Assembly: GCF_001194135.2 (NCBI RefSeq)
Contig: NC_069000.1
Location: 28,789,818-28,853,817, forward strand
DNA length: 64,000 bases
From: Octopus bimaculoides
Taxonomy: Eukaryota
Reading direction: 5' to 3'
Part shown: positions 3,946 through 47,743 of the stretch, in pieces
How the letters are laid out: every line of letters begins with the position of its first letter
Numbering within the stretch: position 1 is the first letter of the stretch
Made by a program: the position numbers and the translations under genes
The notes under the pieces: model-generated
Database searches by the model: none
Seen by the model: only the letters and a program-made list of their open reading frames with translations
Told to the model about the DNA's origin: nothing

Positions 3946-4035
3946 AGTTTCCAATTTTGGAACAAGGCCAGCAATTTGTGGGGAGGGGTAAATTGATTAC
4001 ATCAACTCCAGTACTCAACTGGTATTTATTTTATC
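3946..4035 (-). mobile_element. tRNA-derived SINE family S2, 3' half (split by the LTR element)
   Basis: Matches the 3' half of the copies at 42672-42910 and 60619-60814. Continues at 6503. Confidence 0.8.
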
Positions 4036-4327
4036 TGTGGTGTATGCGTGCGAGTAGAAGTAATCGGCTTCCCTCGGATTCCTTCTTTTGCACGAGTCTG
4101 TCCTGCGGTATCTGATCCTCGCGGCTGGCTCGACCCGAAGAACACTAGAAATAGCAGCTGCTTCTCCCAACACCCATACGATCGCTTGGCATGTCCTCTC
4201 CTCACAACAACCCCGTTCGAAAAAGGCACGAAATCCCAATCGAGGCTCCCTCGGCCCTTCTTCCTCTTCCGGTCAGCTTGCCGTTCCGGTCAGTGGTCAG
4301 CTCCCCAGTTGCTGACGTCATACCACA
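4036..4327 (-). repeat. 3' LTR
   Basis: TGTGGTGTATG...CATACCACA. About 19 mismatches in 292 bp versus 6211-6502 (hand count). Confidence 0.95.
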
Positions 4328-4399
4328 CGCCACCCTGATCTTAAAGATCACGTCCGCCCCTACTCCACTTCGAAGTCCGCCATCCAACCGGGCGGGCGC

Positions 4400-5690
4400 C
4401 TTACGCGTCGAGATCTTCCAGGTGCCTCGCTTCCCTCTCCATGCTCTTCATCCGACGAAGTGGCTATCCTGCGCAGGTCCAGCACGTGACGCGGCATTCC
4501 ATCCACGGATACATTGACCGCCGTTCCCCTGCCCCNNNNNNNNNNTGCGGCACAGATTCTTCCGCTTGTCCGGATCGGGGAGACATGTTATACCAGAAAA
4601 CCGCTTCCAGGGGCGAAATGTGCCCCCTTTCAGCCATGGCCTTGATTGTCTGATGGTGCCTCTCAACGATTCCGTTGCTGCTCGGCCTATACGCCGCTCT
4701 GAACAATCGTTGCACCTTCCACTGGTCAAGCATCTCCCCCAACGCTTCTGAACAAAATGCCACCCCGTTGTCCATTAGCAGTTCTTCCACGGGACCCCTC
4801 TCCAAGAATATCCCGTTCAAAATCCGGGCGATCTCATCAGCAATGCCTGTCCTCAACTCCCTCCAAATGGCCAGCCAGCCTGGCCTGCAGTCAACCATGG
4901 TGAGATACATTCCCTGACGGTAGTGCGTCACATCCACAGCTAGTCTCCTCCAATTGCGCTCTACTGAGAGGTTCCCTTACTCATGCCCACCCAGGGCGGG
5001 ATCAATGGACTGGCATCTGTCACAGTTCCCGACCACTTTCTTGACGTTTCTCCTAGTGACGTCAGCATCAATCATCTTTGCTAGATACAGGGTCCTATCC
5101 ACCCTCAAGTGGTGCATAGCATGCAGCTTCTTCAGTTTGGAGTCACCCAGCCGACACGCTGCCACTATCCCTTTCCTTGCTTCCCCCAGTTCCTCCAACC
5201 ACGCCCTTTTCATCCTGGTGAGTGCGTCCGCCCTGTTTCTCTCCGAAGGCACGAAAACCACGTTCAGCTTCAGTCCAAACTCGGCGATCAGCTCTCCTAG
5301 AACTCCTAGGCGGCGTTTCACCAACATCTCCGCAGCACCTTTCGTCTGGACTCTCTTCTCGCTGGTGATCACTGTTCCTACCCAGCCGACCACGGTGGCC
5401 GAATCCATCTGGATCTTGATCGAGCGCAGTCCCCATCTCAGGGCCAAGTTCACCCCTTTCTACACCGCATCTAGTTCGGCGACATTGATGTGGTTGAAGT
5501 CATCCGCTTTCCGTAGCCAGGCCACATCCTCCACCTCAGCACCTTCAATCTCCAACACAACCCCTATCGCTATACTGCTAGCATCACACCAAACCGTCCC
5601 GCATTCCGTCTTGGGTACATACCAGTTTCCCCTAACTGGGTCTTCCGCTCTCGTCTTCTCTAGGATTTCCTGCATCGATGTGTTGCATCA
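4400..5690 (-). pseudogene. pol remnant: RNase H + integrase
   Basis: VWCDASS...HINVAEL...QMDS...NRADAL (RNase H acidic residues), HAMHH...CDRC zinc finger, DVTH...VDC...MDNG...NGIVERHHQTIK (DDE core). Internal stops. Confidence 0.9.
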
Positions 5691-6175
5691 ACACACAAGC
5701 TTGTGCTACTAGCTCGCTGAGCGCCATCTTTCTCCCACCAGGCAACTGCTGCAATCGAATCCCTACGTCGTCAGGGAACCCACTCACAAACGCCAGCCGT
5801 GCCGCTCTGTCCAGGCCTTCTCCTGTAAACCCAGCCAGTATGGCCAGCCTACGCACTTCCGCTGTGTATTCGTCCACCTGTTCTCCCCCCCCCCCATCTA
5901 ACAGTCTCCAGTTTAACAAAAGCGGCGTACTCGCTCTCCGTATCTGCCTCTCTCAATCTCTGCTCGATCTTATCTGCACTTATCCTCTCTTCCTCGTCCA
6001 TCTCTAAATACAGGGTCAGGGTGCTTCCTTCCAAGTATAGCGCCATAAGACTCGCCACATCGCTTATCCCTTGCAGTCTCGCCACAAGCCTGATCTTTCG
6101 CATCCAGGCCATTACATCTCCCTCACCATTAAAAGGCCTGATCACGTCGCTGGTGATTCTGATCTTAGCTGCCAT
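5690..6175 (-). pseudogene. gag remnant (frameshifted, C-terminus deleted)
   Basis: MAAKIRITSDVIRPFNGEGDVMAW...EQVDEYTAEVRRLA...AFVSGFPDDV, a retrotransposon Gag capsid pattern. Confidence 0.8.
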
Positions 6176-6198
6176 CACGGCGAAGCTTTACATGTGGT

Positions 6199-6210
6199 GC
6201 CGAAATAGCT
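6199..6210 (-). other. Putative non-canonical primer-binding site complementary to tRNA-Phe nt 1-12
   Basis: Plus strand GCCGAAATAGCT abuts the LTR and equals the 5' end of metazoan tRNA-Phe(GAA) as recalled. No TGG follows the LTR in element sense. Confidence 0.6.
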
Positions 6211-6502
6211 GGTGGTGTATGCGTGCGAGTAGAAGTAATCAGCTTACCTCGGTTTCCATCCTTTGCACGAGTCTGTCCTGCGGTATCCGATCTTCGCAGC
6301 TGGCCCGACCCGAAGAACACTAGAAATAGCAGCTGCTTCTCCCAACACCCAGACGATCGCTTGGCATGTCCTCTCCTCACAACAACCCCATTCGAAAAAG
6401 GCAGGAAATCCTAATCGAGGCTCCCTCAGCCCTTCTTCCTCTTCCAGTCAGCTCGCCGTTCCGGTCAGCGGTCAGCTCCCCAGTTGCTGACATCATACCA
6501 CA
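6211..6502 (-). repeat. 5' LTR
   Basis: Direct repeat of 4036-4327. The terminal base differs (G versus T). Confidence 0.9.
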
Positions 6503-6619
6503 TTATCAATCCCACAAGGATGAAATGCAGAGTTGATCTCTGCAGAATTTGAACTCAGAACATAGAGACAGACAAAATGCCACTAAGGGTGTGTTAATGA
6601 TTCTGCCAGCTCACTGCCT
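6503..6619 (-). mobile_element. SINE S2, 5' half
   Basis: Reverse complement begins AGGCAGTGAGCTGGCAGAATC (A-box-like) and contains GAGTTCAAATTC (B-box-like). Confidence 0.8.
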
Positions 6620-7524: not shown

Positions 7525-10500
7525 AAATGAATTAACCCCAGATTTGTTCAAATGTTTAATTTTTGTTCAAGGGTTAACTGCAGGAAAAGATGCTGATATA
7601 TTTTCCCGTATATTAACAAAATTAGAACAGGACCAAAAATTAACTCTACAGGCAGTGACTGAAGAATGCCAGAGGGTTATAAATTTGAGACATGACGCGG
7701 ATAAAATTGAAGAAAAAGATTGCTCTCAGATACATGCATTTCGACCTGAAGCCGATTAGAAAAGGAAAAACAAATGTCAAGACCAAATCCATGCTATGGG
7801 TGTGGAGGCTTACATTTTAGAAGTAGTTGTCCTTTCAAAATTCATAAATGTTTTGAGTGTGGAAAAATCAGACATAAAAGCTCACACTGTATAGTTAAAC
7901 ACAAAAATGGGTCAAGCAAAAAAAGAAAAAAATTTAGAAATAATGTATTGTTAAAAAAATTCTAAGTGAGGCTCAGAAAAGAAAATTTGTGTCCATAAAA
8001 ATAGATAATGTGAATATCAAGTTACAATTAGATATGGGCAGTGATATCACAAAAACTAATATAGACACATGGAGAAAAATAGGGAAACCTAGATTAAAGG
8101 AAACTTCGAAAATTGCATGAGATGAGTCAGGAAAAAAATTGCATTTTATGGGCGAAACGATAAGTGATATTTCATTTCGTGGATAAATTTTGAGAGCCAA
8201 ATTTTTTATGTTGAAAAATACGACAAATTTATTTGGAACAGACTGGACGGAAATATTTAACTTATGGGACCTCCCCATAAATTTTTTTTGTCAAAATGTG
8301 AATGGCTCTTCCGCCAGTACAAATAAGGCATCAGAGGATCTAAAAAAAGAATTAAAAAAAATTTTACCCAAAGTTTTTTCTGAGGAATTGGGTCTTTGCA
8401 CCAAAACAGAGGCAAAGTTTCAAATGAAAGAAAACACTATACTAGTATTTAAACCAAAACGAATGGTACCTTTCGCAGCATTGAAACAAGTCAACAAAGA
8501 ATTGGATAGACTTGGAAAGCTTGGCTTTATTGAAAAAATTGGTTACACAAAATGGGTGTCCCCAACTGTTTATGTCAAGAAAAAAATGATAAAATCCGAG
8601 TATGCGCTGATTTTTCAACGAGATTAAATGAATGTTTGATACCATATAATTACCCACTACCAAACCCTGAGGAAATTTTCGCAAAGTTGAATGGAGGAAA
8701 ATTTTTTTCAAAGTTGGACCTATCTGAAACATATTTGCAGGTAAAAGTTAGTGAGGAATGTTCAAAATTATTGACAATAAATGCTCATAAAAGGTTGCAA
8801 AAATTTAATTGACACCCCTTTGGTATAAAGGTAGCACCTGGCATTTTCTAACAAGTTATAGACATTATGCTTGCAGGTTCAGATTTCGCTACAGCTTACA
8901 ACACACTCATAAAAAGTGAATCTTGGGGCCAGCATGCTGAGCATGTTAAAAAGGTCTTTGAAAGAATAAAAGATTATGGGTTTAAGCTCAACGAGGAAAA
9001 GTGTGAATTTTTTATGCCATGAATAAAATATCTAGGGCAGATTATTGATGAAAATGGACGCAGACCAGACCTGTATAGGGCGAGTGCAATAAAAAATATG
9101 CCTCTTCCGACAAACATTACAAAGTTACAAGCATTTTTGAGGCTCGCAAATTACTACCAGATATACATACCAAATATGTATGATTTAAGAGCACTCCTGA
9201 ATAACTTGTTAAAAAAGATGTTAAGTGGAACAGGTCAGAAAAATGCCAAAAAGCTTTTGAAGAAATTGAAAATGTCTTAATGTCAGAATTGTTATCACAT
9301 TTTGACTCAAATTTAGAAATAGTAGTGGCAGCAGATGCAAGTGAAAGTGGTATCAGAGCTGTGATTTAGTAGCTCATGCTTTGCATTCATTATTGCTGGC
9401 TGAGAAAAGTTACAGTCAAAAAGAAGCATTAGCCATCATATTTACAGTAAAAAATTTCATAAATTTATACATGGAAGAAGGTTCCGTCTGCAGAGAGACC
9501 ACTGCCCATTATTGTTGATCTCTGGATCAAAAAAGGGTATCCCCACACATACAGCCAACAGTTTGCTGCACTGGGGAATGATCCTACTGAATTACTTCAA
9601 AATGGAGTATTTGCCATAAAAAAATTGGGACATGCAGATGGTTTGTCAAGGTTAATACCAAAATTCATTGAACCACTAGAAGATAGTGATAGTGTGTTAA
9701 AAGCCGAAAATGAAATAAAAAATATATTGTGCAATGTTGTGCATGACATTGGACCTGTGACATTGGAGGAAATAAAAATTAAGGCAGAGACGGATGAGTT
9801 TACCATAAAAGTGGAAAAAATAGTGAGATCAGAAGAAACAAATAAAAGTATATGCATGACTGGATGTAACACAATTTCAAACTTGTATTTGATATGTGAT
9901 AATGTGCTTATGTATGCACAGAGAGTCATAATGTCTACCTCACTACAAGGTCGAATGTTAAAGGAATTCCACACTGGACATCCAGGAATTTCTAGGATGA
10001 AGTTGCTTTTGAGGAGTTATGTTTACTGCCTAAAAATGGATCTTGATATTGAGAAGTTGGTAAAATCCTGCAGAGGTTGTGCTCTGGCAGCGAAATCACC
10101 ACTTATAAAATTTCAGTCTTGGCTCAAGACTGATATTCCATGGTTCAGACTACAAATAAACTTCACAGGACCATTAAACCGACCATATTATCTAATAGCG
10201 GAAGATAGATTTTCAAAATGGCCAGAAATGTGTAAATGTAGAAAACTGACACCCACGGTGACAGTGGAATTTCTACAAGAACTTTTTGCTAGGTATGGTG
10301 TTCTGGATACCATAGTCTCTGATAATGGTACACAATTCACGGTGAACAAATTTAAGAATTTTTGAAAGATGTACTCAGTTGAACACATCACCCAAGATCA
10401 AACAGGCGAGTGGAAAGCTTCATGGCTACATTTAAAAGAGCATTAAAGAAATTAAGAAACAAGCTAGTCAATGACACAGCATCAGCACAGTTCTTGAGGG

Positions 10501-11034: not shown

Positions 11035-11590
11035 NNNNNNNNNNNNNNNNNNNNNNNNNNNNNNNNNNNNNNNNNNNNNNNNNNNNNNNNNNNNNNNNNN
11101 NNNNNNNNNNNNNNNNNNNNNNNNNNNNNNNNNNNNNNNNNNNNNNNNNNNNNNNNNNNNNNNNNNNNNNNNNNNNNNNNNNNNNNNNNNNNNNNNNNNN
11201 NNNNNNNNNNNNNNNNNNNNNNNNNNNNNNNNNNNNNNNNNNNNNNNNNNNNNNNNNNNNNNNNNNNNNNNNNNNNNNNNNNNNNNNNNNNNNNNNNNNN
11301 NNNNNNNNNNNNNNNNNNNNNNNNNNNNNNNNNNNNNNNNNNNNNNNNNNNNNNNNNNNNNNNNNNNNNNNNNNNNNNNNNNNNNNNNNNNNNNNNNNNN
11401 NNNNNNNNNNNNNNNNNNNNNNNNNNNNNNNNNNNNNNNNNNNNNNNNNNNNNNNNNNNNNNNNNNNNNNNNNNNNNNNNNNNNNNNNNNNNNNNNNNNN
11501 NNNNNNNNNNNNNNNNNNNNNNNNNNNNNNNNNNNNNNNNNNNNNNNNNNNNNNNNNNNNNNNNNNNNNNNNNNNNNNNNNNNNNNNNNN
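11035..11590. other. Assembly gap (N run)
   Basis: Ns. Other gaps lie at ~4536-4545, ~14928-15641 and 39565-40346. Confidence 1.
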
Positions 11591-14900: not shown

Positions 14901-15642
14901 TCTCTCTCTCATATACATATATATATANNNNNNNNNNNNNNNNNNNNNNNNNNNNNNNNNNNNNNNNNNNNNNNNNNNNNNNNNNNNNNNNNNNNNNNNN
15001 NNNNNNNNNNNNNNNNNNNNNNNNNNNNNNNNNNNNNNNNNNNNNNNNNNNNNNNNNNNNNNNNNNNNNNNNNNNNNNNNNNNNNNNNNNNNNNNNNNNN
15101 NNNNNNNNNNNNNNNNNNNNNNNNNNNNNNNNNNNNNNNNNNNNNNNNNNNNNNNNNNNNNNNNNNNNNNNNNNNNNNNNNNNNNNNNNNNNNNNNNNNN
15201 NNNNNNNNNNNNNNNNNNNNNNNNNNNNNNNNNNNNNNNNNNNNNNNNNNNNNNNNNNNNNNNNNNNNNNNNNNNNNNNNNNNNNNNNNNNNNNNNNNNN
15301 NNNNNNNNNNNNNNNNNNNNNNNNNNNNNNNNNNNNNNNNNNNNNNNNNNNNNNNNNNNNNNNNNNNNNNNNNNNNNNNNNNNNNNNNNNNNNNNNNNNN
15401 NNNNNNNNNNNNNNNNNNNNNNNNNNNNNNNNNNNNNNNNNNNNNNNNNNNNNNNNNNNNNNNNNNNNNNNNNNNNNNNNNNNNNNNNNNNNNNNNNNNN
15501 NNNNNNNNNNNNNNNNNNNNNNNNNNNNNNNNNNNNNNNNNNNNNNNNNNNNNNNNNNNNNNNNNNNNNNNNNNNNNNNNNNNNNNNNNNNNNNNNNNNN
15601 NNNNNNNNNNNNNNNNNNNNNNNNNNNNNNNNNNNNNNNNNN

Positions 15643-16399: not shown

Positions 16400-17735
16400 A
16401 TCTACTAAAAAGTGTGTGAGAATGAGAATGGTTGAAAGGAGAAAGGTGTGGAAACTGAAAGAAGAAGAAACAAGAGCAAAGTTTGAGGAGAGTATTGGGG
16501 AGTTGGTAAGCATTGATGCACCAGATTTGTGGAAGTCTATTAAAGAAGGGGTACTAAAGGCAAGTGACGAAGTGTGTGGAAGGATGAAAGGTAGGAGAGA
16601 TTGAAGAGATACATGGTGGTGGAACGAGGAGGGTTATGATAGTGAGGAAGAAGGAGGCGCACAAAGCTTTATGTAATAATAGGACTGAGCAAATGAAAGC
16701 AAGGTATAATAACATGAAGAATCGTGCAAAGAGGGTGGCTGCGAGATCTATGAGGAAGGAGCTGAGAAGAGGTTGAGTGAGCTGGATGAGAACCCAGATA
16801 GAGTGTTTAGGTTTATTAAATCAATGAAAAAAGATGGAAGAGATGTTGAGGGAGGAAGAGGCATTGAGGGGGGGGGGTGATGGAAGGTTGAAGGACAGGG
16901 GAAGAGTTTGGAAGGAGCATATGGAGGGAATCATGAATGAGGAGAATGAATGGGATCAGAGGGTGGAAGCTGCTGTGGTGAAGGGGCCAGTGGAGAGGGT
17001 TAGTCAGGAAGAAGTAGTGGAGGCAATGAAGGAAATGAAAACAGGAAAGGTAGCTGATCTATCAGAAGTAAGTGTGGAAATGATAACTGCAAGTGGAGAG
17101 ATAGGGATTGTTGTGATGTTGGAGCTCTGCCAAGGTGTGCTGGATGGAAGAGGAATGTCAGATGATTGGGCACCAAGTGTGGTGGTACCGATCTTCAAGG
17201 TGATGAGTTGTGGGGCATATAGGGGAGTGAAGTTACTGGATCATGCAATGAAGATTGTAGAAAGGGTATTGGAAAGAAGAATTCAGAAAACAATGGATGT
17301 GGATAAGATGCAATTTGCTTTTATGCCAGGAAAGGGGATAATGGATGCAATGTTCATTGTAAGGAGATTGCAGGAGGAATACCGAGATAAGGAGAAGGAG
17401 TTATACTTGTGCATTGTTGATCTGGAGAAGGCATTTGATAGGATTTCAAGGAAGGTGATTGAATGAGCATTGAGGAAAAGAGGTGAACTAGAGGTAATAG
17501 TGAGGGCAGTGATGAGTTTGTACGATGAGGTAAAGACAAGAGTTAGAATTGGATCAGATCTGTTGGAGGAGTTTGTGGTGAAAGTTGGTGTGCACAAGCA
17601 AAGTTGACCAAAGAAAATGTGGAGGGGACAGGTGGAGGAGGAGATTAGGTGAGTTGGCTTGAGGAAGGAGGATGCCCAGAACTGGGCAAGATGGTGAGAG
17701 TGGTTGCTGCAAGAATGAGGTAAATCTAGCCAACT
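16400..17735 (+). mobile_element. RTE LINE fragment with RT core internally deleted
   Basis: WWWNEE, YRGVKLLDHAMKIVERVLE, QFAFMPGKG, IVDLEKAFDRI, then a jump from KVGVH directly to the RT C-terminal tail. Confidence 0.85.
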
Positions 17736-39564: not shown

Positions 39565-40349
39565 NNNNNNNNNNNNNNNNNNNNNNNNNNNNNNNNNNNN
39601 NNNNNNNNNNNNNNNNNNNNNNNNNNNNNNNNNNNNNNNNNNNNNNNNNNNNNNNNNNNNNNNNNNNNNNNNNNNNNNNNNNNNNNNNNNNNNNNNNNNN
39701 NNNNNNNNNNNNNNNNNNNNNNNNNNNNNNNNNNNNNNNNNNNNNNNNNNNNNNNNNNNNNNNNNNNNNNNNNNNNNNNNNNNNNNNNNNNNNNNNNNNN
39801 NNNNNNNNNNNNNNNNNNNNNNNNNNNNNNNNNNNNNNNNNNNNNNNNNNNNNNNNNNNNNNNNNNNNNNNNNNNNNNNNNNNNNNNNNNNNNNNNNNNN
39901 NNNNNNNNNNNNNNNNNNNNNNNNNNNNNNNNNNNNNNNNNNNNNNNNNNNNNNNNNNNNNNNNNNNNNNNNNNNNNNNNNNNNNNNNNNNNNNNNNNNN
40001 NNNNNNNNNNNNNNNNNNNNNNNNNNNNNNNNNNNNNNNNNNNNNNNNNNNNNNNNNNNNNNNNNNNNNNNNNNNNNNNNNNNNNNNNNNNNNNNNNNNN
40101 NNNNNNNNNNNNNNNNNNNNNNNNNNNNNNNNNNNNNNNNNNNNNNNNNNNNNNNNNNNNNNNNNNNNNNNNNNNNNNNNNNNNNNNNNNNNNNNNNNNN
40201 NNNNNNNNNNNNNNNNNNNNNNNNNNNNNNNNNNNNNNNNNNNNNNNNNNNNNNNNNNNNNNNNNNNNNNNNNNNNNNNNNNNNNNNNNNNNNNNNNNNN
40301 NNNNNNNNNNNNNNNNNNNNNNNNNNNNNNNNNNNNNNNNNNNNNATAT

Positions 40350-47557: not shown

Positions 47558-47675
47558 TAGGGTGTTAGGGTTAGGGTTTTAGGGTCAGGGTTAGGGTGTT
47601 AGAGTTAGGATTAGGGTTTAGGGTTATGGTTAGGGTTAGTGTTACGGTTATGGTTTTAGGGTCAGGGTTAGGGTT

Positions 47676-47709
<34 letters not shown>

Positions 47710-47743
47710 CGGTTTAGGGTTAGGGTAAGGATTAGGGTTGGGT
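47558..47743 (+). repeat. Interstitial telomeric (TTAGGG)n array with variants
   Basis: About 30 units: TTAGGG, TTTTAGGG, TCAGGG, TTACGG, TTATGG. Confidence 0.95.

Follow-up and report, generated by a model that had tools for sequence, protein, structure and literature searches.

Three modes of minus-strand priming are textbook knowledge for retroelements with long terminal repeats (LTRs): priming from the 3′ end of a tRNA, priming from a cleaved half of the initiator tRNA (copia, Ty5), and self-priming (Tf1). The copia and Ty5 elements, members of the Pseudoviridae, are primed by a 5′ fragment of initiator tRNA-Met that arises from an internal cut, their primer-binding site being complementary to the 3′ end that the cut creates. 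The self-primer of Tf1 is 11 nt long. Canonical 3′-end priming by tRNA-Phe is exemplified by mouse IAP, while Ty1, Ty3, and HIV make further tRNA contacts beyond the primer site, those of Ty3 and Ty1 being bipartite contacts between tRNA and template. Here we describe an LTR retrotransposon copy of 2.47 kb on the minus strand of a 64,000-nucleotide stretch of the Octopus bimaculoides genome (hereafter the window; NCBI RefSeq assembly GCF_001194135.2, contig NC_069000.1, positions 28,789,818 to 28,853,817 of the forward strand), where it occupies positions 4036–6502. The 12 bases directly after its 5′ LTR are the exact complement of the 5′ end of tRNA-Phe. We consider it probable, judging from the anatomy and conservation of the site, that these bases form a minus-strand primer-binding site, the primer being a 5′ fragment of tRNA-Phe with U12 as its last nucleotide, in a small family of LTR elements from marine invertebrates.

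The 12 bases after the 5′ LTR of the octopus element

Positions 6199–6210 of the window read GCCGAAATAGCT on the plus strand and AGCTATTTCGGC on the minus strand, which is the sense of the element. A first-pass annotation, made from the letters of the window, had claimed that the 12 nt abutting the LTR exactly complement tRNA-Phe nt 1–12 and that the match ends at the LTR edge. The comparison bore this out: the 12-mer GCCGAAATAGCT is identical at 12 of 12 positions to nt 1–12 of human tRNA-Phe(GAA), whose whole template sequence is printed in PMC11706605 and whose 5′ end agrees with a forward primer in PMC10505166. The site covers the 5′ strand of the acceptor stem, U8, A9, and the first three bases of the D stem. 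Complementarity runs from tRNA nt 1 to the edge of the LTR and no farther, the complement of tRNA-Phe nt 13–18 (CAACTG) being different from the LTR end. No TGG follows the 5′ LTR of the window element, and the canonical site for the 3′ end of tRNA-Phe, computed to be TGGTGCCGAAACCCGGGA, is absent from the element. The probability of an exact 12-mer arising by chance at a fixed site is p = 6e-8, or about 4e-6 when 64 tRNA 5′ ends are allowed, and the 12-bp duplex has a predicted energy of −18.7 kcal/mol in the window element (range −18.7 to −23.5 kcal/mol over all forms of the site).

The element is organized as follows, from its 5′ to its 3′ end:

6503–6507, minus strand: target-site duplication on the 5′ side, GATAA in element sense; the same five bases lie at both LTRs
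6211–6502, minus strand: 5′ LTR, 292 nt, 94% identical to 4036–4327
6199–6210, minus strand: putative primer-binding site of 12 nt, reading AGCTATTTCGGC in the sense of the element and complementary throughout to nt 1–12 of tRNA-Phe(GAA); the same block occurs in seven relatives
6176–6198, minus strand: spacer from the site to the gag ATG, starting ACCACA; not conserved in relatives
5689–6175, minus strand: broken gag fragment, located by tblastn with the gag of a relative (L137)
4356–5675, minus strand: broken pol fragment with the C-terminal/connection region of reverse transcriptase (RT), RNase H, and integrase; rve match and comparison with a relative
4328–4342, minus strand: polypurine tract region AAGATCAGGGTGGCG, just before the 3′ LTR; the relatives L003 and L133–L137 have a tract of the same AGATCAGGGG type at their 3′ LTR
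4036–4327, minus strand: 3′ LTR, 292 nt, ending ...ACACCACA, delimited by LTR comparison
4031–4035, minus strand: target-site duplication on the 3′ side, GATAA in element sense; the same five bases lie at both LTRs

The LTRs start with TGTGGT. The 3′ LTR ends in a terminal CA, and the 5′ LTR ends in ...ACACCACC, its last base (6211) being substituted relative to the 3′ LTR, with the 12-mer directly after it. The purine-rich tract adjoins the 3′ LTR. G+C content is 55% within the element and 35% in its neighborhood. Coding capacity is much reduced. The gag remnant keeps approximately residues 3–159 of a 257-aa relative with one frameshift, and the pol remnant keeps only about residues 440–904 of a 984-aa relative; its reading frame is broken by four stops and one frameshift, and a 10-N assembly gap lies within it. 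A single large internal deletion took the C-terminus of gag with its zinc knuckle, the protease, and the RT core. The window copy is old and defective, and its 12-nt site is still intact.

As the first-pass annotation had noticed, TGTGGTG at 6193–6199 repeats the LTR terminus, and ACCA comes directly after the 12-mer. Within 6176–6198, this LTR-terminus repeat (ACCACA in element sense) is followed a few bases on by AGCT..TCGCC, a shortened look-alike of the site that occurs in none of the relatives. The repeat and the look-alike may reflect a small local duplication in an old copy, or chance. ARAGORN found no tRNA gene in the whole 64-kb window, and a tRNA gene or tRNA-derived insertion at the site was rejected on that ground.

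Relatives, conservation of the block, and its candidate tRNA partners

With the gag fragment as query, 14 proteins were matched, and on their contigs AGCTAT comes after LTR-like ends. When the Pol of an intact relative served as query, 788 proteins were retrieved at E <= 1e-20, most of them about 950 aa long and encoded on contigs of about 4.2 kb; the named hosts among them include Oratosquilla oratoria, Argonauta hians, and Petrolisthes manimaculis. Intact members measure approximately 4.2–4.4 kb and encode a gag with a CCHC zinc knuckle, an aspartic protease, RT, DUF7047, RNase H, and integrase. The 12-nt site follows the 5′ LTR in the window element and in at least seven relatives from cephalopod, crab, mantis-shrimp, and other invertebrate assemblies. 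In five of these relatives, LTR pairs that are 97–100% identical and 5-bp target duplications set the element boundaries independently of the motif:

L133, Argonauta hians: LTR identity 100%, target duplication TCAGT
L134, Petrolisthes manimaculis: LTR identity 100%, target duplication TAAAC
L135, Oratosquilla oratoria: LTR identity 97%, target duplication CAGAA
L136, ERZ25878500: LTR identity 99.6%, target duplication TTTAG
L137, ERZ25072293: LTR identity 99%, target duplication TTTAC

In all five, the 12-mer is found directly after the 5′ LTR and not after the 3′ LTR, which passes straight into the duplicated target. The two LTRs of the Argonauta element, identical throughout, end (at 8966–8975 and 13022–13031 of L133) in ...ATCAAG and not in ...ACA, and their boundary is set by the TCAGT duplication. 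A sixth relative, L003, is represented by a single LTR lying between the polypurine tract and the 12-mer, and four Logan contigs of its family begin 29–30 nt ahead of the LTR end. If the Logan assembly used k = 31, an assembly-graph branch at the LTR end would be expected to place the contig starts there.

The search found no relatives in viral contigs. Genome contigs yielded three (L138, L139, and L140), with 37–42% Pol identity, on short contigs in metagenome-assembled genomes of bacteria (Granulosicoccaceae, Pseudomonadota); these are most likely eukaryotic contamination of bacterial bins. Only L140 among them reaches the site region, where it reads ...TTACA, AGCTAGCCGGT, and then the gag ATG, the LTR boundary being provisional. 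Its AGCTAGCCGGT shares the AGCTA start, differs in the complement of the acceptor strand, and is without an identified tRNA partner.

Eight elements (the window element, L133–L137, L003, and L011) were aligned on the LTR edge. The conserved block spans exactly 12 columns, nine of which are identical in 8/8 elements: AGCTAT at positions 1–6 and GGC at positions 10–12. The only three columns that vary lie opposite tRNA nt 4–6, in the middle of the acceptor stem, with G1–C3 and A7–U12 constant. The 20 columns on each side are at background (approximately 3–4 of 8), except for the LTR-terminal ACA. Between the LTR edge and the site there are 0 nt in every element. The stretch from the site to the gag ATG is of variable length, measuring 4 nt in L137, 7 in L011, 9 in L135, 13 in L003, 15 in L134, 17 in L136, 23 in the window element, and more than 25 in L133. 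Therefore, the block is anchored to U5 and not to the start codon. Since the gag ATG can come so close behind the block, there is no room for a canonical site elsewhere.

Intact relatives were examined for a canonical TGG site of the kind whose absence the first-pass annotation had reported. None of the eight elements, the window copy included, has one (0/8), and all carry AGCTAT, three variable bases, and GGC in its place. The annotation had further suggested that the element RNA reproduces the 3′ strand of the acceptor stem plus ACCA. This is true of the window copy and does not extend to the relatives, in each of which different bases follow the 12-mer (CATT, CTAA, ACTG, CTTG, AATT, TCTT, and ATTT).

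The block occurs in three forms:

Form A, AGCTATTTCGGC: window element and L133 (Argonauta)
Form B, AGCTATCTAGGC: L134 (Petrolisthes), L135 (Oratosquilla), L137, L003, and L011
Form C, AGCTATCCCGGC: L136

Decayed versions of forms A or C are present in the old copies L009, L010, L012, and L001. The form of the site does not go by Pol relatedness, identity being about 50–60% for all pairs among the eight elements; this fits a site that tracks the host tRNA, as weak evidence. Two further loci carry side observations. In L002, at approximately 10130–10160, CCTATTTCGGGG lies about 100 nt past the LTR end given by blastn repeats (10040) and just upstream of an ATG, the LTRs being 89% identical; L002 is probably a rearranged copy in which the site has degenerated. 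The young Oratosquilla element sits upstream of the 5′ end of a tRNA-Val(CAC) gene (8095–8167 of L135, minus strand), its 5′ LTR about 195 bp away from the gene. This single case may hint at insertion near Pol III genes.

A natural tRNA partner was recovered for form B. Scanning metagenomes with the complement of form B plus CAG gave at least 120 matches, most of which are bacterial tRNA-Phe, tRNA-Met, and tRNA-Thr genes. One match, on contig L014, is a tRNA-Phe(GAA) gene identical to the human gene at 67/73 positions, with the same D, anticodon, and T arms and an acceptor stem starting GCCTAGA. Form B, AGCTATCTAGGC, is the exact complement of its nt 1–12 (12/12). The contig is poor in open reading frames and carries exons of an SLC12A9-like transporter whose nearest named relatives are from rotifer, fluke, scorpion, and fishes, which identifies the tRNA gene as metazoan. 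In the L014 tRNA, positions 4 and 69 form a G-U pair (4:69). The elements match the complement of its 5′ strand at 12/12 positions and do not copy its 3′ strand; this speaks for pairing with the 5′ strand of the tRNA. The expectation that the post-LTR 12-mer would covary with tRNA 5′ ends is thus upheld in that variation is restricted to the positions opposite nt 4–6 and that form B matches a natural tRNA-Phe, and it stops short at form C, for which no partner was found. If the sites do follow their hosts, tRNA-Phe is predicted to start GCCGAAATAGCT in Argonauta hians (GCA_054771915.1), GCCTAGATAGCT in Petrolisthes manimaculis (GCA_034508575.1) and Oratosquilla oratoria (GCA_046742065.1), and GCCGGGATAGCT in the host of L136 (ERZ25878500).

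Proposed priming from a tRNA 5′ fragment and rival explanations

Under the favored reading, tRNA-Phe or its 5′ fragment would anneal to the site, probably aided by the zinc knuckle of Gag acting as a chaperone. A cut between U12 and C13 would then release the primer, most plausibly after annealing and by the RNase H of the element at the end of the RNA–RNA duplex, by analogy with the way Tf1 cuts its own RNA. The 3′-OH of U12 would be extended into U5 to give minus-strand strong-stop DNA, and synthesis of plus-strand strong-stop DNA would copy the 12-nt RNA primer to its 5′ end, which would account for the length of the site. If inherited, the copied primer would renew the site from the host tRNA, and this would account for the exact match to the tRNA-Phe 5′ end in young copies. 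The normal polypurine tract at the 3′ LTR was counted in favor of a primer site. A wider proposal stands at an even balance of probability: that the widespread lineage represented by the 788 Pol relatives (molluscs, crustaceans, and other invertebrates) primes from nt 1–12 of the host tRNA-Phe, freed by a cut in the D stem, and that the site is rewritten in each cycle and so tracks the acceptor stem of the host.

Several points weigh against priming from a tRNA-Phe 5′ fragment. To our knowledge, 12 nt is shorter than the familiar classes of tRNA 5′ fragments. That synthesis would start from U12 of a D-arm-cleaved tRNA, as put forward in the first-pass annotation, is an inference from the anatomy of the site, which fits and is kept in the relatives. 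Conservation of the block alone shows function and not tRNA pairing, because the elements are homologous. No conserved exact complement of 8 nt or more to a second part of tRNA-Phe occurs within 200 nt on either side of the site. The tRNA expected for form C (GCCGGGATAGCT) was not found in papers, genome contigs, or viral contigs, and neither the window nor any element locus contains a tRNA-Phe gene; covariation host by host is therefore a prediction. The L014 contig is metazoan, with a phylum placement limited to its nearest matches (rotifer, fluke, and scorpion), and is not demonstrably crustacean. Finally, no report of a primer site complementary to a tRNA 5′ end was found in open-access full text (subscription literature and Repbase reports lay outside this scope), and a review (PMC7472051) describes primer sites complementary to tRNA 3′ ends only. 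The claim that the priming mode is undescribed agrees with that search.

The rival that survives best, which we regard as unlikely, takes the block to be a conserved cis element with another role (packaging, dimerization, Gag binding, or translation control) that resembles a tRNA complement by chance, priming being achieved in some other way. The homology of the elements, the lack of further tRNA-Phe complementarity nearby, and the missing partner of form C are all compatible with it. The geometry of the block is nevertheless that of a primer site and not of a translation signal, its distance being always 0 nt from U5 and variable to the ATG. Two of its forms each complement a different natural tRNA-Phe 5′ end at 12/12 positions, its variation is confined to positions opposite acceptor-stem nt 4–6, and no alternative primer site exists between LTR and gag.

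More doubtful is the possibility that the site binds the 5′ strand of full-length tRNA-Phe, unfolding or recruiting it, and that the 3′-OH comes from elsewhere, such as the freed CCA end at a second site or another small RNA. Bipartite contacts of the Ty3 and Ty1 kind offer a precedent, and the RNA of the window copy, alone among the elements, repeats the 3′ strand of the tRNA plus ACCA. That ACCA is not conserved, and the 200 nt on either side contain no further conserved complement of 8 nt or more to tRNA-Phe, its 3′ end included. Moreover, U5 has to be copied from a 3′-OH that is base-paired next to the LTR, a position that falls to U12 and to no other nucleotide.

Self-priming of the Tf1/sushi type, in which the element's own transcript would pair with the site through its 5′ end and be cut to free the primer, is very improbable. 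It draws some appeal from the 12-nt length of the site, close to the 11 nt of the Tf1 self-primer, but the LTRs do not supply the partner. Those of the window element, L134, and L135 contain no site at <=3 mismatches to the would-be primer, those of L003 and L133 contain one 3-mismatch site each, and the longest exact complements in these five LTRs (0–6 nt) are no better than in shuffled LTRs. This mode has been described for Tf1 and Tj1 (PMC4600332).

The last alternative, an 18-base insertion or duplication inside the 5′ LTR end of the window copy alone and no special primer site, had been raised in the first-pass annotation and is suggested by the ACCACA at 6193–6198 that repeats the LTR terminus and by the last base of the 5′ LTR, which differs from that of the 3′ LTR, but it is refuted and has practically no probability left, because the LTR pairs and duplications of L133–L137 put a 12-mer of this class outside the LTR, after the 5′ copy and never after the 3′ copy, and none of the five has ACCACA after it.

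Should priming from the tRNA-Phe 5′ fragment be true, it would give a concrete biological role to short 5′ tRNA fragments, and the family would escape silencing by 3′ tRNA fragments aimed at canonical sites. Software for LTR annotation that relies solely on complements of tRNA 3′ ends would overlook the entire family or label it wrongly. The combination at the site (LTR end, AGCTA, and the complement of the acceptor 5′ strand) could serve as a family marker and for the study of element–host co-evolution. The claim is testable with existing genome and small-RNA data, and the pattern is clean, with apparently recent copies in named species.

Comparison with known LTR retroelements

Protein comparisons were used to relate the family to described groups. 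The gag–protease–RT–RNase H–integrase layout is shared with retrovirus-like elements, Odin, and BEL/Pao. The solved structures that the integrase and RT match best are retroviral (MMTV, HTLV, HIV-2), and some members match Pfam models of retroviral protease, RNase H, and the integrase zinc domain. Pfam domains specific to BEL/Pao (Pao-type peptidase, DUF1759-type Gag) are absent from the L004 proteins and the 120 relatives listed. A BEL/Pao element with Pao peptidase, DUF1759, and Integrase_H2C2 adjoins the family member in L137 (1–4197, minus strand); because the models match this neighbor, such features would have been detected if present in the family. The Gypsy-type RT_RNaseH model gave no match in the family. 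Odin has been reported only from sea anemones, in a paper that does not mention a primer site (PMC9040795). Together, the Pfam and structure matches point to a retrovirus-like integrase and RT and do not place the family among LTR elements.

Elsewhere in the window, two further retroelement open reading frames lie on the plus strand at 9625–10365 and 16834–17466, one encoding an integrase that carries rve and an H2C2 zinc domain of the Gypsy type and the other an RT fragment; both are unrelated to the element at 4036–6502. Runs of N marking assembly gaps occur at 4536–4545 (within the integrase region of the element), 11035–11590, 14928–15642, and 39565–40345, and a degenerate, TTAGGG-type interstitial telomere-like repeat lies at 47562–47730. 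A motif of TTAGGG instead of TTAGG speaks against an arthropod as the host of the window.

With respect to priming, the family resembles canonical 3′-end users such as mouse IAP: it would draw on a host tRNA, its site lies directly next to U5, and its 3′ LTR is preceded by a polypurine tract. It differs in that the opposite end of the tRNA is matched and the 3′-end site TGGTGCCGAAACCCGGGA is lacking. Unlike Ty1, Ty3, and HIV, it has no further tRNA-Phe complementarity within 200 nt.

The resemblance to copia and Ty5 lies in the presumed primer, a 5′ tRNA fragment paired at its new 3′ end and not at CCA. The tRNA here would be tRNA-Phe instead of initiator tRNA-Met, the presumed cut falls after nt 12 in the D stem, whereas copia and Ty5 use a cut in the anticodon stem, and the site would pair with the whole fragment up to tRNA nt 1. 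The gene order of the relatives (RT, RNase H, integrase) is also not of the copia type, in which integrase precedes RT.

With Tf1 and Tj1 (Metaviridae, Tf1/sushi), the family would have in common a very short 5′-terminal RNA that is fully paired at a site abutting U5. In Tf1, RNase H frees the primer by cutting where an RNA–RNA duplex ends (PMC4600332). Here the 5′-terminal stretch would come from a host tRNA and not from the element's own transcript, the complement of the site not occurring in five LTRs beyond chance. If confirmed, this would be a fourth priming mode of LTR retroelements, one that combines features of tRNA-half priming and self-priming.

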